Of a stretch of 64,000 nt of DNA, positions 1 to 16,167 are shown in pieces. The stretch is from NCBI GenBank assembly GCA_965112735.1, contig OZ218960.1, positions 806,001 through 870,000 of the forward strand. The letters run 5' to 3'. Source of the DNA: Phaeosaccion multiseriatum (lineage: Eukaryota > Protista > Ochrophyta, other classes). Made by a program: the position numbers and the translations under genes. The notes under the pieces were generated by a model, which was not told the origin of the DNA, did not search any database, and was given only the letters and a program-made list of their open reading frames with translations. The first letter of the stretch is position 1. Each line of letters starts with the position of its first letter.

Positions 1-2520
1 TGACGTGTGGTCGCTGCTCTGGAGTGGTGAGAAGCACGAATGTGACTCTCTCACCCACCCACCCACCCATCCTTCACTTCCTCCATCCCTCACTCTCTTC
101 CTTGCCTCCCTCACTCCCCTCCCTCTCCTCCCCCCCTCCCTCCTTCTGCTCCTCTTCGATACACAAGGTGCAATCGAGCTCTGTCTGTGGTGTGCTGCTG
201 GCTGAGCGTGCTCATTCTATGGAGCGAAGTAGTAATTGGCGTTACAAGCTACAATCTGTCCCCCTTCGGACAGATCCTCAGAGGTGAGCAGGGTCTGGCT
301 ATGGCACTTAAGACCCCCACCCACCCACCCACCCACCCACCCCCACACCCACCCCCCCACCCACCCTCACTCACCCACCCACCCGCTCGCCCACTCGCCA
401 CCCACCCACCCACCCCGCCCGCCCCGCCCACCATTCCTGCCAATCAGTCCTGGGAAGTGCGACGCATCACACTGGGGAGAGCACCCCTGTCATACTGCAG
501 GTTGCGGCGATGGTTCCCTTTCTATACATGTCTGTGTGTTGTTATAGGGCACTCTTTAAGATCAAACTCTTTGGAGAGTTCTCGCTCAAGCCGCGGCACC
601 ACAGGTGAGTGAGTGAGTGAGTGAGTGAGTGAGTGAGTGAGTCAGACTTGTGCATAAACTTCTGTGATTGGTGACATCTGTGATGACCTTTGTTTTGTTT
701 GTGGTCACATCCTTTCCATCTGTGGGGTAAAATATCTGTCCCTCTTTTGTCTGTCAATGAATGAGTTCATCCGAGTCAAGTCGGTCAGTCTATACACATA
801 GTTTCTCTCCTCGCCTTTGCTTCGCTTCGAGCTCTCTCCTCACGTCTCTCTGTTTTCTTCGCCGCCCGTCTGCTTTTCTCTCTTTTCCTTCGCCCTCCCC
901 TTTCTCTCCTTTCCCCGTCTTCTCTCTCTCTCTCTCTCTCTCTCTCTTATGTGTGCGTGTGTGTGTGCGCGTGCTTGCGTGTATGCAGCTTGCCCGGCCC
1001 CCTGTTGTTCAACGCACAGTACCTCTGTCGGCTTCAATTCTCGCTGGGCTACAACTACCTGCAAGTGCTCGGAGCAAGCAGCGGACGAGTCGTGTCCTTC
1101 ACGGCCTTCCAAGATGTACGTGCTTGCGTGGGCTTGCGCGCGCTTAGTTGCCCTCCCTTCGTCCCTCCCTTCTTCCTTCTCTCCCTCCTTCCTTCTCTCC
1201 ACCCCTCCCTCCCTCCTCCCTCCTCCCTCCCCCCCTCCTTCCCTCGCACCCTCCATCCCTCCCTCCCTCCCTCCATTCCCCCTTACGTACGTCGCACGGC
1301 TTTGCGTTCCCCGTTGTCCCCCTCCCGCCGCTATTCTCTAAATCCCTCCCAACGCACGGGCACACACACACATCACCACAACCACACCACAACCACACCA
1401 CAACCACACCACAACCACACCACAACCACACCACACCACACCACACCACAACCACACCACACCACACCACAACCACACCACAACCACACCACAACCACAC
1501 CACAACCACACCACAACCACACCACAACCACACCACAACCACACCACAACCACACCACAACCACACCACAACCACACCACATTCACACCACAACCACACC
1601 ACAACCACACCACACACATCACCACAACCACACCACAACCACACCACAACCACACCACAACCACACCACAACCACACCACAACCACACCACAACCACACC
1701 ACAACCACACCACAACCACACCACAACCACACCACAACCACACCACAACCACGCCGCAACCACACCACAACCACACCACAACCACACCACAACCACACCA
1801 CAACCACACCACACCACACCACAACCACACCACAACCACACCACAACCACACCACAACCACACCACACACATCACCACAACCACACCACAACCACACCCC
1901 AGGTTATGAGTGACATGGAGGTGGTGCCGCTGCTGGGCACGAGTTTCAATGTGTACGCCCCTCTAATGATGGTGGTGCTGTGCATCTTCACCTTCGGCAA
2001 TGGCTACGCGCGCATGCTTCAATTCATCGGCCTTGAACATGAGGATCTCCTTCTCGCAGTTGGTGGAGAAGGCAAGGATCGTATTCAGGAGGGCAAGTCG
2101 CTCATTGATCGCAGTATGCGACAGCGGCTCAATCGAGAGAAGCGACTTCAGCAGCAGCAGCAGCTGGCGGGCGGACATGCAGCGGGTGGTGGAGGTGGTG
2201 GTAGTGGATCCATCGACCTTAGCTTCGGTGAGGGAGGTGTGGGCGGGGGAGGAAGGGGCATGAAGGGAATCAACGGACTATCCCCCCCCCCTCCACACGG
2301 CGGCACTGGTGGTGGTGGTAGAGGTGGGCTGCGTACCCACCATCTGAGTGGCGCTAGGGATGGTCGGGGTCATCAGCGGTCGGGTGGGGAGGCAGGAGGG
2401 GCGGGAAGCAGCGGCAGCGGGGGGGGAGGGACTCCCATGTATGTGCCTCCCTCGAACCTGCTAGCAGGGGGGGGGAGGAGATACGGACAGGTGCCAGACC
2501 AGGACGATGGCACAGTATGA
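1..2520 (+). CDS. LMBRD2: LMBR1-domain membrane protein (LMBRD2-like), 3' part; exons approx. 168-283, 448-604, 989-1115, 1903-2520 (5' end outside window)
   Basis: GT-AG spliced translation gives LSVLILWSEV...SPFG, YMSVCCYRALFKIKLFGEFSL, LLFNAQYLCRLQFSLGYNYL, TAFQDVMSDMEVVPLLGTSFNVYAPL, matching the recalled LMBR1/LMBRD2 C-terminal region; stop TGA at 2518-2520. Confidence 0.85.
1371..1898. repeat. 11-bp minisatellite (CACCACAACCA)n filling the 3' part of an intron
   Basis: Visible tandem array ending just before the ccccag acceptor at 1902; source of the HHNHTTTTPQP / VVVVWLWCGCG artefact ORFs. Confidence 0.95.
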
Positions 2521-2523
2521 CTG

Positions 2524-2570
<47 letters not shown>

Positions 2571-3551
2571 TGGTGATACATAAGCTGCAGCAGAAACAGC
2601 AGCAGGAGCGGCAGGAAGAGGAAAGCATAAGATATATGCAATAGGAGCAATTAGATCCCTTGGGAGTCCATATGGGGATAAAACGAGGGAAGTGAAGAGT
2701 AGAGGGGTTTTGCCCTTCCCCCCTCCACTACATGTCATCTACAATTGACACACTATTACACCAAGGAAGGACGCTTCCCTTTTGGAAGCTGTGGTGAGGC
2801 GAAGGGGCTTTGTTGAGGTATGATTTGATGTCTTTTTTTCCCTTTTCTTTCCTCTCTTTGATTATTACTATTAAAAAATAATTGATCTATTGATTGAAGC
2901 TGTGTTGCGGTATAATTGAAGGAAGGAAGAATGTCAAAAAGATTTCCTTTAGTAAGCTGTGGTGAGGCGAGTGGAGTGATCGCCTCGCAGTCGTCATGTG
3001 AGTGTCTGAGTCAAGTAAGTCACAAAAGAAGTGTAGCCAAATGGCAAGGTCTCCCCCTGCGCCTGGTTGGATTTGTAGGTAAGTACTATTAGATTGATTT
3101 CAGTTTCAATCAAGTGACCGCGGAGGAGTTGCAGCTTGGTCGGGCGCGGGGGGTGGGCTGTGACTCTCAAAGTCGAGACGTGAGAAGGGACACAAAAAGA
3201 AGGAGACAGGGGAGGGGAGGGTGCAAGCAGCGGATGGAGGGGAGTATCTTTGTGACTACTGACTGAAGTGAAGTCAGTCAGTCAGTACCCCCCTTTCCCA
3301 CCCCCGCTCCTCCACCACCACCCCACCTCCTAACCCTTTGTTTTCGTCCATTCTTCTCAAGGCTCTGCAAGCAGAGAGAGCCATTTGCCAATTTCCCCCC
3401 ATATTGTAACAAAACAAAACGCCGTCATTAACACATTCAACCGCTCCACAAAGCCCTTAGTTCCATCACTGAACACCATCACAGGCTACACACGTAATAC
3501 TTACTAATACTCCCAACTACTCCACCGTCTACCCCGAACGCATTCGTCTCG

Positions 3552-3724
3552 ATGCATCTGTTCTGCCACTGCCTGGCTTTCTCTTGGCCCCCTCTTGGCC
3601 CCCTCTTGCGACCCAAAAGTAAAGAGGAAGGCATCCTATGTCGTCGGCCTCCTCTTCGCAGCGGAGGCACGTCAGCTTTGGGAGGAAAACATTAGCCAGG
3701 GAAGCGTCACACCATCCCATGCAC
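3552..3724 (-). promoter_or_regulatory. Candidate SECIS element with a very long apical extension in the msrA 3' UTR
   Basis: Minus strand GUGAC (3710-3706), 12 nt GCUUCCCUGGCU, AA, ~113 nt insert, AGCCAGGCAGUGGC, AGAA (3564-3561); outer GUGCAU/AUGCAU pairing. Folded by eye only. Confidence 0.35.
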
Positions 3725-3804
3725 ACAGCCCTCCTCCTCCTCACGCGCTCTTCCGTCTGACCATCCCGTCCACACATCTCTCCTCCTCCCCGCGTACTCT
3801 TTCT

Positions 3805-4092
3805 CTAGTACCGTCTGTTCTTGCGATAGAAGTCCTGCGAGGTTGATGAAGGAGCAGTCCGAGGGGGGGCAAAAGAGAGCACACATTCAGCACCGGTTAG
3901 ATGGATCAGAATGTGATTATGGCGGCATACTCTCTTTCCCTTCCATTGCCATCCTTTCTGACGAACCTGGTGGTACTCCTCCGCTCTGAAGGCCTCCGTG
4001 ACCTCTGCCTGGTACGTCTTCACTGACTTGCCGCTCGCCTCCAGTTCCGCCACCTGCCAAGGCAAAGCAAGCAAGATAACACGCACACGGGT

Positions 4093-4135
<43 letters not shown>

Positions 4136-5811
4136 GATTATCCACAAGGAGGAATAAATGAGGGTGTAAGTTCTGAAACGGCGTAAGCAAGCAAGCATTC
4201 GGAACTCTCCACTGACGACACACACTAATCACACTGCCGGGGACAACGAACAACCCGTATCTCCCTCGTTCCTGCGCCGCGGGGTCGGTCCTCGGTTTGG
4301 GTCCCCCCTCCCTCCTTGGCATGGGTCCCCCCCCCCCCCTCCTCCTCTCCCCTCCCGCCCCGAATGAGTAGAAGGAGAGCCTTCCTGTAGGAGAATGTTC
4401 CTCACCTTCGCGTCGAGAACCTTCTTCTGGTCTTCGTCGTGCCACCAAACGCCCGTCATGTACTGCCTTCCTCTGTACGATGAGTCAGTCCCACAGTTGT
4501 GCTGTGCATGGATGGCAGTCCATGTGGGCAGGGGCAGGGACAGAGGCAGAGGCAGGGGGGCAGAAGCACGGGGAGATGTAGGGGGGCAATGTGCGTATTG
4601 TGGCGGGGTAAGGGAAGGCATCACGGACCCCACGATCATTATCAGAGGCAGCAGCTCCCCCCATACACGCAGCTAGAACTACACGTTTGCGCGCTATTCT
4701 TGTTTGCGTGTGTGACGTATGTATACACGCCTCCACGAACAGCGCGAAAACAGCAGGAGCGGAGGCCCTTCCTACCTCCCTCCCTCCCTTCCTCTCTCCC
4801 TCTCTCCCTCCCTCCCTCCCTCCCTCCCTCCCTTCCTCCCTCCCTCTGGCCGTGCACCAACCTCGGTGAAGAAGAAGTCCACCAGCTCTCTGTAGGAAGT
4901 CTCCTGGGGGTCGTAAAAGACTCGAACGCCCTCTGTCTGGTCACCCATACTGGCGGCGGCCGGCAGAGAAGGGAGAGAGAGAGAGAGAGAGAGAGCGTGT
5001 GAATGACAACGCAGGCAACAAAAAACGTGTGTATCTATGTATGTGCGTGTGTATCTATGTGTGCGTGAGTGAGTGTGCGGGAGTGAGTGGCACAGTGTGT
5101 GGGGCATGGAGGGAATTAATAGGGAACGACTTCTTTCTGTCTCACAATGACTCGTTCGCCATGGCCGAGGCTGCTTAAGGTGGGTCATTTCACTCACTCG
5201 TGGTAGGTTGGCCACTCCTTCTTTCCACCAACGTAGATGCAAGTCACGTCGAGAACGCCCCGACGCTTCCTAAAGGCAGCGTCTGGAACAGGGGCACCAG
5301 AACAGCAGTCAAAGAACGCGAGGAGTGAGGGGATAGTGGGCAGAAGGTTTGTCCTCTGCTTCCAAGAAGACGCACTACTCCACACGGTATATACCATGGC
5401 CCCCCTCTCCCCACAAACTCACCGGGACCCCAGAATCATCCTGGAGGAAGGCACGCAGGGGGGGGGGGGAGGACTGAGAACAGGGCAGGTGCGGAGGACT
5501 TGCGGACGAAGGAGAAAGGAGTAAAGGAGGGGAGGAAGCGAAGAAGAGCAAGCCTTCCGTCCCTTACCGAGGGCGAACGTGGCACTGGCTCTGTTCTCGG
5601 TGGGCGCCTCCAGTTCCAATAGAGGGCACTCCGCGGTGTCACTAAAGCTTGACATGGCGAGGGCGCCGGTCCAGCTCCTCGTACGTCCTGCTCCTTTTAT
5701 GCTGTTCCTCGTGCTCGTTCGAGCTCTTGGTAGTGGCAAAAGACTTCCCACAAACGCCTGGGTCCTCACTGGGCTACTTAATGTGCTTCTAAGCCTGTTC
5801 TGGGCCGCCAT
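3805..5811 (-). CDS. msrA: Peptide methionine-S-sulfoxide reductase A, selenocysteine form; exons 5568-5811, 5423-5440, 5198-5282, 4862-4949, 4406-4501, 3967-4053, 3805-3834
   Basis: Spliced product ATFALG-[TGA]-FWGPDAAF...YVGG...PTYHDMGDQTEGVRVFYDP..SYRELVDFFF...RQYMTGVW...AFRAEEYHQDFY has the MsrA motifs; all introns GT-AG with matching phases; N-terminal R/S-rich extension resembles a transit peptide. Confidence 0.93.
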
Positions 5812-5960: not shown

Positions 5961-7999
5961 TCATCCACCCTGCTTGATTCCCCGTCCTCTCTTCCCTCCC
6001 TCCCCCCCCCCCTCTTTCCTCTCCTCCTCCGCCACAAGTCTATCAAAAAGGCCCTCCATGTCGGCCCCCTCTCTGAACAAGTGGCATGTGCCATCCTCTT
6101 CGTACAGCACGCACGATACATCCTGAGCGCGAAGGCGGCGCCGGAGCTTCTTCCACCTCTGCAGGCCGCTGCTACTTCTACTACTACTACTACTACTACT
6201 GCTGCTGTTACTACTACTGCTACTACTTCTACTACTAGATACTGTCGAGCCGCTGGTCCGCTCCTCATCCTCCTTCTTCTCCTCCTGCGTCCTCTTCGCT
6301 TCGTCTCCTCCTTCTCCTCCTTCGTCGTCTTCTTCTCCATCGTCTCCCGCCACCTCTGCCGCCACACCCAGCGCCTCCAGAGCGTGGCGAAGAAGCTCAA
6401 GTCGCACTTGCTCCTTCCTTTCCTTCCTCTCCGTCTCCCTGTCCTTTGTTGCCCCCCCCCCTCCCAACCGCTCCTCACCTTCGCCGCTGCCAGAAGGGGC
6501 TTCGTCCTCTATACTCTCCCCAGCAGCAACACCAGCAGCACCAGGGGTAGCAGTTGGTGTTACAGCGGGAGGAGGAGGAGGACGAGCAACCCACGCAGAT
6601 GACGATGAAGAAGCAGAGGAAGAAGCTGCTTTTGGCAGAAGGTGTACAACCTCCTTGGCTAGGTGCTGGTTCACGGCTTCACTCTCTGCCCCCACCGCTA
6701 GGCAAGAGAAGCGCTCTACAGAGCCCGTGGGAAGTATGTGGAACAAGACCGGACCGTTGTGATCGTCCCACCCTGCAGTAAGTCAGTAAGTAGTTGATGT
6801 CAGGGAGGAGAGAAAAGAAGTATAGAAGCCGAGAAGAGAATTATTCGCTCAAAGGAAGGAAAAAAGTGACAGACAGACATGTCTCCTCACTCCTGAGCTC
6901 GAACTTGTTGGTCCTATGGCCGAGCATGTCAGGTCGTCACTCTCGCTCCCCTCTCCGCTAGCTTACCACTCCCACCTCCACTTTGCCCGGCCCTCTCCAC
7001 CGAGCGCACTCTCGCTGCGGCTGCTGGTGTATCACCAACAGTTCACTGCTCTTCCTCCTTTACCACCACCTCCCCTCCCCCCCCCCTTCCTCCTACCCAC
7101 GAACCTGCGAGAAGCATGTCCACCGCAAAGGGTCTCTTCCCCGCCGTGTGTGTGTTGCCGTGCGTCTTATCGGCGATCATTCGGGCCAGCATGTGGCAAG
7201 GAATGGCAGTCCCATACACGAAGCGGTGCTCACTGCACCACCCCTGAGACAAGTTGCAGAGGTGTCTGAAATCGCTCCACAAACTGCTTGTTGGCCGTCA
7301 TGGATCACGAAAGAAGAGGAGGAACACAGGCAAGACCAGCAGCGACAACGGCAGCACAACGGACAGGAAGCAACTCTTAACACCAACAACAAAAGAGGCA
7401 GATGCGTCATGCATGTATGCTTTCGCTCTCTCTCTCTCTCATTGTCTTGCCCCGGCCGTGGTGGCAAAAGCATGCACTGTGCAGGTCCAAAAGAAGCCTT
7501 CTGAAGAGAGCCCTCGCCCCTTCTATACGTGTACGACCTTCCCCGCGTCGACCCTTACCCCTTCACTTGAGTTACACTCAATCACTTAGCCTCTCATTCC
7601 TACCACCCGCTCCCCCGGAGTCAGTCACGTACCCAGCTCCGGCAATGCCGACGTGGTTATCAACCTTCCACACCATCTTGCCCGGTTTAGGAGCAGCGAG
7701 CGATTTGGGAGAGCGCGGCTGCCACACAGCCACCACAGCGCATCCACCACCACTCACCTGAGCAAGCGGGAGAAGAATGCGCACGGGTTGGGGGTCGGGT
7801 GTGAGGGTGTACTCAGGCCTCCCTCAAATGGTCGGGAGGGGAGACGTGGGGAGGGGAGGAAGTGGTATACACACATTCTTTCTCTCTATCTCTCTCACAC
7901 ACACATGTGACGCTGCATCGAAGAGCGACTCACCCCAACAACGGTGCTGCTACCCCTCTTTGTTGCTTCTATTGCGTACTCCACTTGGTACATACGGCC
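5961..7999 (-). CDS. Divergent 20S proteasome alpha-subunit homologue (alpha6/PSMA1-like); exons 7934-7999, 7633-7757, 7105-7283, 5961-6772; true N-terminus unresolved
   Basis: GRMYQVEYAIEATKRGSSTVVG, KMVWKVDNHVGIAGAGLWSD, KRPFAVDMLLAGWDDHNGPVLFHILPTG, AVGAESEA, ELLRHALEAL follow the alpha-subunit motifs in order. Confidence 0.85.
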
Positions 8000-14810: not shown

Positions 14811-16167
14811 ATGGCTGGATTCAAGTCCTTCGTGGTGGTGTGCTTGGCGCTGTGCCTCGCATCGGTGTCGGCCTTCGTCGCACCCACAGCCACCATTGCG
14901 CGAGGTAAGTTCATGTTTCTCCAGTTGTAGGATTCGCCTGTTGCATACGTTTGCAAGAGAGGTGGGCCCTCGCAAGGCGGGGGAGCGGCACGAGCACGCT
15001 CGTGCGATGCCGCAGACGCGAAGAGGTGTCTCAATGCTCGAATGGCGCAGCATGGAAGGGTGGGCTGCACACGGTGGGATTTTTCGTGCGAAGAGGGATT
15101 TGTGCTGAGTCCAAGTTGCGCAGCACAGCACGCAGAGGAGCACAGGGACGGACAGTCTTCAGCCAGGGACTACCGAATGAGTGCTCCATGCCCCTGCTCC
15201 AGCGTCGCCTGAAAAATTGCAGCGGCAGACACAAAAGGAAAAATAGAATCAAGGGGATGTTCTTTTCAGGGGCAAGGGCGGACGTGCTTACGGCACCGCG
15301 GCAGGGAGAGGGCAAAGCGACAGCAACACTTGTCGTAAGGAGCTTTGTGACTTTGACAGTCCTTACTCCTGGTGGGCAAAGCGAATGCAAAGGATGTCGT
15401 CGACTCTCAGTGTCGCCAGGAGGGGAAGGGGAAGGATCAGTCCGAGAGGGGCTTGCAGCATAGAACCAGCGAACCTGCCATCGACCTTCGTGCGCGATCT
15501 TCCGCGTCTTTGCCCCCCTGACCTCACCACACTCGTGCCTATTTCAGCTCTCGTTTTGTACCTAACATCACACCCCCCTTTTCATCCGCTTTTCCATCAC
15601 CAACACCAAAACCAAACAGTTGCCACCAAGACCGCTGCCACCACCACCATGAGCGCCGTGTCCCCCCTGGGCAAGGCCATGGCCGGTGTGGCTGCCCTGG
15701 GCCCCGCCGTCGTGTCCCTGCCCGCCATGGCTGACACCACCGACATCGTGTCTCAGCTGCCCACCACACTCGTGGGGCTGGAGGTGCAGTTCGCAGCCTA
15801 CCTCGCCATCCTGCTCGGTAAGAAAAAGTCACAGCTACACACTCACTCTTATTTCAGCCCTAACCCCTCCCTGCACCGTGGTACCTGCGTTGCCTATGTA
15901 TGCTCATTACTGTGACGGGTGTTTCTGTTCAACTTCCGTTGTCTTTACGCCCCCGCTGTTGTCGTACTCATTTGTTGAGTCGTTTGTGAGTGTGGTGCCG
16001 TCTCTTCACACTGTCGCCCCCCATGCCCTAACCTTCCTGTTCGTGCCTCTCTCCCTCTCTCTCTCACTCTCTGCGCAGGTGTGTTGATTCCCGTTTCGTT
16101 CCTCATCCTTCTCTTCGTGCAGTCAGAGACCAGGATATCGGGAGAGGAGAACGGCCCCTCAAGCTAA
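14811..16167 (+). CDS. psbM: Nuclear-encoded photosystem II reaction centre protein M with bipartite plastid presequence; exons 14811-14904, 15620-15817, 16079-16167
   Basis: MAGFKSFVVVCLALCLASVSA-FVAP (signal peptide plus ASAF-type site), AxA-type 'LPAMA', mature part EVQFAAYLAILLGVLIPVSFLILLFVQSE. Confidence 0.9.

Follow-up and report, generated by a model that had tools for sequence, protein, structure and literature searches.

Forms of the repair enzyme methionine sulfoxide reductase A (MsrA) that carry selenocysteine (Sec) have been described from several algae. Two papers (PMC9404770, PMC2375036) give Chlamydomonas reinhardtii as the source of the first such enzyme; Sec-MsrA is also found in Ostreococcus and in the diatom Thalassiosira pseudonana (Lobanov et al. 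2007, PMC2375036), and Jiang et al. 2020 (PMC7539508) count MSRA with the Sec proteins that are most widely distributed in algae. An earlier, sequence-only reading of the DNA studied here had stated that Sec forms of MsrA exist in green algae and some other lineages, as the records for Chlamydomonas, Ostreococcus, and Thalassiosira confirm (PMC2375036).

The window (the whole 64,000-nt stretch of Phaeosaccion multiseriatum DNA that was analyzed, to which coordinates without a prefix refer) contains what is very probably, judged from its DNA, a genuine Sec-MsrA gene, in which the catalytic Cys of the GCFWG motif would be replaced by Sec at UGA 5438-5436. The sequence-only reading had proposed that this TGA is recoded as Sec; the proposal is supported by an intact seven-exon MsrA gene, Cys in four paralogues, a genome with Sec machinery and further selenoprotein genes, and a 3′ UTR that contains a SECIS-like element. 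The product would be a short, apparently cytosolic MsrA of 163 codons. Since green algae and a diatom are already known to have Sec-MsrA, this gene adds to a known type, and the knowledge of how Sec-MsrA works is unchanged by it. The undescribed detail appears to be the 18-nt exon that bears the Sec codon, for which a full-text literature search found no description, and its consequences are mainly for annotation: gene predictors would skip so short and stop-bearing an exon or truncate the gene, leaving the enzyme missing or mis-modelled and the selenoproteome under-counted.

Gene structure and the TGA-bearing microexon

The MsrA gene lies on the minus strand and comprises seven exons, from an ATG at 5655 to a TAG at 3807-3805, with a total of 492 nt in one frame that is open apart from the TGA. 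Its six introns (127, 140, 248, 360, 352, and 132 nt) all have GT donors and CAG acceptors, and many of them are filled with G/A-rich and C/T-rich low-complexity tracts. Exon 1 (5568..5655; 88 nt) opens with the ATG at 5655-5653, holds 29 codons plus 1 base, and ends in ...ATFAL-G|gtaagg. The microexon, exon 2 (5423..5440; 18 nt), encodes (G)-U-F-W-G-P-(D), with the TGA at 5436-5438 as the Sec codon. Exon 3 (5198..5282; AAFRKRRGVLDVTCIYVGGKKEWPTYH...) matches positions 15-40 of the Pfam PMSR profile (E 0.003) and has 50% identity to the corresponding exon of the paralogue on contig C12. Exon 4 (4862..4949; …DQTEGVRVFYDPQETSYRELVDFFFTE), with a conserved Glu and the YDP motif, matches profile positions 48-73 (E 1.4e-4) and is 41-47% identical to the paralogues; exon 5 (4406..4501; …SYRGRQYMTGVWWHDEDQ…), with the conserved G-x-Q-Y, matches positions 86-107 (E 0.088) at 39-44% identity to the paralogues. 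Exon 6 (3967..4053) ends in the C-terminal MsrA motif (…FRAEEYHQ), and exon 7 (3805..3834) encodes DFYRKNRRY and the TAG; neither of these two exons, nor exon 1, has a Pfam match alone. Cys residues, as candidates for the resolving residue, are encoded in exons 1, 3, and 5.

A neighboring gene on the same strand ends upstream near 5961, so that promoter and 5′ UTR together have about 300 nt. On the other side, a convergent gene on the plus strand is located at roughly 1950-2600; between these two the MsrA gene is tightly bounded. Inside or beside the convergent gene there is a tandem array of about 500 nt (1400-1900) with an 11-nt unit (GGTTGTGGTGT, minus strand).

Around the microexon the minus strand reads ...ccttcctccag|GATGATTCTGGGGTCCCG|gtgagt. 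The splice sites (acceptor ctccag, donor gtgagt) agree with the consensus, a strong and long polypyrimidine tract lies upstream, and the flanking introns are short (127 and 140 nt), so that the active-site motif stands alone in an 18-nt exon. Exon 1 ends and exon 3 starts in phase 1, giving ...ATFAL-G-U-F-W-G-P-D-AAFRK... across exons 1-3. The sequence-only reading had placed an 18-nt minus-strand exon with an in-frame TGA here, and its coordinates (5440-5423, with the TGA at 5438-5436), splice sites, and phases all proved to be as claimed. G-TGA-F-W-G-P occupies exactly the place of the MsrA active site, exon 3 starting at position 15 of the PMSR profile, and exon 2 thus supplies the N-terminal catalytic motif G-C-F-W-G with its Cys/Sec nucleophile. 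By our own rough estimate, which was not computed with a tool, the 285 nt that separate exons 1 and 3 would contain AG, GA-TGA-TTY-TGG-GG, and a GT 18 nt further along, all in the correct phase, with a chance probability on the order of 1e-8. No second G/A/S-[C or stop]-F/Y-W is present on the minus strand between positions 3000 and 7000, and there is therefore no hidden alternative exon encoding Cys in that interval.

As had also been noted from the letters alone, skipping of the microexon keeps the frame: its length is 18 nt, and the codon at the junction is G|AC whether exon 2 is included or not. Skipping would remove exactly G-U-F-W-G-P. The sequence-only reading had raised the idea of an on/off splice switch. 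Inclusion might conceivably be regulated, for example by selenium supply, yielding either an active Sec-MsrA or a frame-preserving isoform with neither the active site nor the UGA; the splice signals of the microexon are strong, however, and we consider such a switch very unlikely. If it did exist, the skipped isoform would be spared premature termination and the decay of its mRNA whenever selenium ran short.

MsrA paralogues and selenoprotein context

Scored singly against PMSR (PF01625), exons 3, 4, and 5 reach 18.2, 22.6, and 13.5 bits, each below the 23.7-bit cut-off, with the profile order and spacing right. Exon 4 aligns with the solved MsrA structures 4gwb and 1nwa, the Glu of H-A-E there corresponding to T-E-G(-V) here and YDP being kept; exon 5 aligns with the MsrA/B structure 3e0m through G-R-Q-Y, with the Tyr kept. 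Exon 3 alone had no PDB match. I-Y-V-G-G of the present gene corresponds to G-Y-A-G-G in the C12 paralogue. The Glu of T-E-G-V and the Tyr of G-R-Q-Y are presumably the catalytic or substrate-binding residues of MsrA known from established structural work.

A whole-genome search located four further MsrA loci, on contigs C5, C13, C10, and C12. All four have GCFW with Cys, encoded by TGC at the aligned codon; only in the present gene is the codon aligned with Cys in these homologues an in-frame TGA. The exon 6 sequence TEAFRAEEYHQ corresponds to TKWFKAEDYHQ, AEEYHQ, and AEDYHQ in the paralogues. Among the MsrA loci of the genome the present one departs furthest from the Pfam model (E 0.059 and 0.118). 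In exon-wise tblastn comparisons, exons 3-6 are only 39-64% identical to the corresponding paralogue exons, and for this reason we regard the gene, as far as its sequence tells, as a real, old, and diverged MsrA and not a fresh dead duplicate. No relatives emerged when the open frame around exon 4 was used in a word search, or when that around exon 5 was used to scan metagenomes.

The sequence-only reading had pointed out that the organism would need Sec machinery, and the genome provides it in the form of tRNA-Sec, SepSecS, SelD, and eEFSec domain IV. Rfam detected at least 10 genes for tRNA-Sec (10 above threshold), nine in tandem on C12 (G000:C12:2660299-2661653, L002-L008, with a period of mostly 170 nt) and an extra copy on C10 (G000:C10:1901872-1901957, L001). 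ARAGORN classified all nine of the copies submitted to it (eight of the array and the one on C10) as tRNA-SeC with anticodon UCA. SepSecS is represented by three colinear pieces (best 203 bits), eEFSec domain IV by an in-frame match of 44 bits, and PSTK by a weak match only.

Other genes in the genome have the marks of selenoproteins. Two GPx genes carry a TGA at NVASxU, and in both an exon ends right at this Sec codon; they read NVASK-TGA-G and NVASE-TGA-G. One is on the minus strand (L027, G000:C3 ~4051250) and has a compact canonical SECIS at L027:295-376 (minus), and the other is on the plus strand (L026, G000:C1 ~331245). A SelM-like gene on the plus strand (L033, G000:C2 ~2843090) reads ETCSG-TGA-QLNKLKG; its SECIS, at L033:2695-2776, is likewise compact and canonical. 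A Sec-MsrA beside four Cys paralogues in a selenium-heavy genome would be useful for following Sec/Cys exchange within one family.

A candidate SECIS in the 3′ UTR

A hairpin in the 3′ UTR (3552..3724, minus strand, which is the coding strand), starting 81 nt after the stop codon, with its GUGA core at ~95 nt, is a good candidate, by sequence and predicted fold, for the SECIS of the MsrA gene. It was found with a descriptor modelled on the published SECISearch pattern, in which RUGA-N is joined by a helix II of 9-14 nt with AA immediately behind it, and the 3′ side has N-GA; the apical length was relaxed to 220 nt. Helix I pairs 3724-3719 with 3557-3552; the 5′ core is GUGA at 3710-3707, followed by C at 3706; and the 12-nt helix II pairs 3705-3694 with 3578-3565 in 11 pairs, with one U.U mismatch and a 2-nt bulge. 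Unpaired AA at 3693-3692 leads into a structured apical insert of about 110 nt (~3691-3579), and the 3′ core is A-GA-A, with GA at 3563-3562.

The candidate is the sole strong descriptor match in the 3′ region, with a helix-II score of -14.4 compared with -9.7 to -11.7 for the compact SECIS elements of the genome. When the 1205-nt 3′ region was shuffled 2000 times with its dinucleotides preserved, a score as good arose 5 times, a frequency that is optimistic as a p-value, the descriptor having been fixed after the candidate was seen. Matches of equal quality numbered one other in the 128 kb of window strands and none in ~98 kb of other loci, about 226 kb of strand sequence in all. The candidate and the compact elements alike show UGA-C, and in both the fourth quartet pair is not Watson-Crick. 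The candidate is atypical in three respects: its core is GUGA and not AUGA, its apical insert measures ~110 nt, and in its quartet U faces A. Its total folding energy is no better than that of shuffles (z +0.51), and constraining it to the SECIS fold costs 4.2 kcal/mol relative to the free MFE.

Rfam gave no SECIS in positions 2400-5800, either at the gathering threshold or at E<=10, and its SECIS_1 model had no match in the whole genome. This blank is uninformative, because the textbook type-II element at L030:1524-1572, clear and canonical, was missed too. A SECIS with a structured apical insert of ~110 nt may be a lineage-specific form that standard tools miss; if it is real, it shows why SECIS searches based on patterns and on Rfam fail in this lineage. 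A covariance model from the genome's compact elements was dropped, as the MAFFT alignment was not structural. Other possible cores downstream of the gene were rejected: AUGA at 3428-3425 with GA near 3329 has a poor helix register, an AA too far from the core, and a z of -0.07, and GUGA 3482 and AUGA 2738 have weak G-U-rich helices or no 3′ GA in register.

SECIS-like hairpins were also seen at several other places. One follows a Cys-type MsrB gene on C6 that has no in-frame stop in its catalytic region, a warning of SECIS false positives in GC-rich UTRs. Another, in the window at 15437-15527 (minus strand), has G-UGA-G, an 11-nt G-rich helix, AAAG, and a 3′ UGAU, and its score (-17.0) is better than that of the MsrA candidate; a gene on the plus strand starts at ~15650, with the hairpin immediately upstream, and no minus-strand selenoprotein ORF was seen above it, so it may represent either chance or an unannotated gene. 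On C12, a GUGAC...AA...AGAG match with a helix score of -12.8 (L019:2712-2944, plus strand; G000:C12 ~1802930-1803165) occurs ~140 nt beyond the last exon that was matched in the Cys-type MsrA paralogue; a Sec-to-Cys conversion could have left it behind as a fossil SECIS, or the match could be due to chance. On C3, a weak Rdx/SelT-like match, in which no CxxU codon was located, has downstream of it an AUGA-C...AA...C-GA-C element (L029:1018-1221, minus strand; G000:C3 ~1166744-1166947) whose helix I is strong and whose GC-rich apical extension of ~150 nt is very stable (constrained fold -95 kcal/mol).

For the MsrA gene itself, we infer that the microexon is included in the mRNA, that the 3724-3552 hairpin functions as its SECIS, and that Sec is incorporated at the UGA. 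After splicing, ~90 nt would separate the AUG from the UGA, and the SECIS core would follow ~490 nt downstream of the UGA. The stem-loop in the 3′ UTR would direct decoding of the UGA as Sec, with Sec-tRNA(Sec) delivered there by eEFSec and SBP2-like factors, and the selenolate of G-U-F-W-G would attack methionine-S-sulfoxide in the way that the thiolate does in Cys-MsrA.

Alternative readings and comparison with known MsrA

The TGA could instead be a true premature stop, derived from TGC or TGT, in a dead or dying fifth MsrA copy that is redundant to the four Cys paralogues. That those paralogues are intact, that this copy is the one most diverged from the Pfam model, and that the exon-4 word search and exon-5 metagenome scan produced no orthologue to show constraint would all fit such decay. 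The gene nevertheless has no other lesion, with its start, six introns, frame, and stop intact; the catalytic Glu, the Tyr of GRQY, and AEEYHQ are kept even though no whole-exon identity to any paralogue exceeds 50%; the sole stop falls on exactly the one codon where the family is known with Sec; and a SECIS-like element is present in the 3′ UTR. Decay is on this balance improbable.

Alternatively, the microexon might be used rarely or not at all, the main mRNA joining exon 1 to exon 3 and encoding an MsrA-like protein without an active site. An exact, in-phase G-U-F-W-G-P would not persist in an unused stretch, and the consensus gtgagt donor, the cag acceptor, the long pyrimidine tract, and the short flanking introns all look like those of a working exon; we think this reading very unlikely, even if skipping keeps the frame and 18-nt exons are hard for the spliceosome to define. 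An error of assembly or base calling, by which an ordinary Cys-MsrA with TGC or TGT would appear to carry TGA, takes only a single base change. It is extremely unlikely, given that a Cys gene would have no need of a SECIS-like element in its 3′ UTR, that the genome clearly uses Sec in other genes, and that the assembly, in only 22 contigs, seems to be of high quality. The reading as a functional nuclear Sec-MsrA gene is the one we prefer.

So read, the gene has the domain and motif order of Cys-type MsrA (PF01625; 4gwb, 1nwa, 1ff3, and the four paralogues): G-x-F-W-G, I/G-Y-x-G-G, x-E-x-V-x-V-x-Y-D-P, G-x-Q-Y, and A-E-x-Y-H-Q. It differs from the paralogues in its catalytic residue, which is TGA/Sec here and Cys there, and in the isolation of the motif: an intron directly follows GCFW in two of the four, but in none of them does the motif stand alone in a microexon.

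With Sec-MsrA of C. reinhardtii, as described in the literature, the present gene would share an algal host, a UGA-encoded Sec in place of the catalytic Cys of GCFWG, and decoding through a 3′ UTR SECIS, for which there is a candidate in our case; that organism is a green alga, whereas this one is a stramenopile. Published searches for Sec-MsrA used compact canonical SECIS patterns, in contrast to the GUGA and ~110-nt apical insert of the candidate element. The enzymes of T. pseudonana and Ostreococcus belong to the same family and would share the same recoding, and Thalassiosira is likewise a stramenopile.
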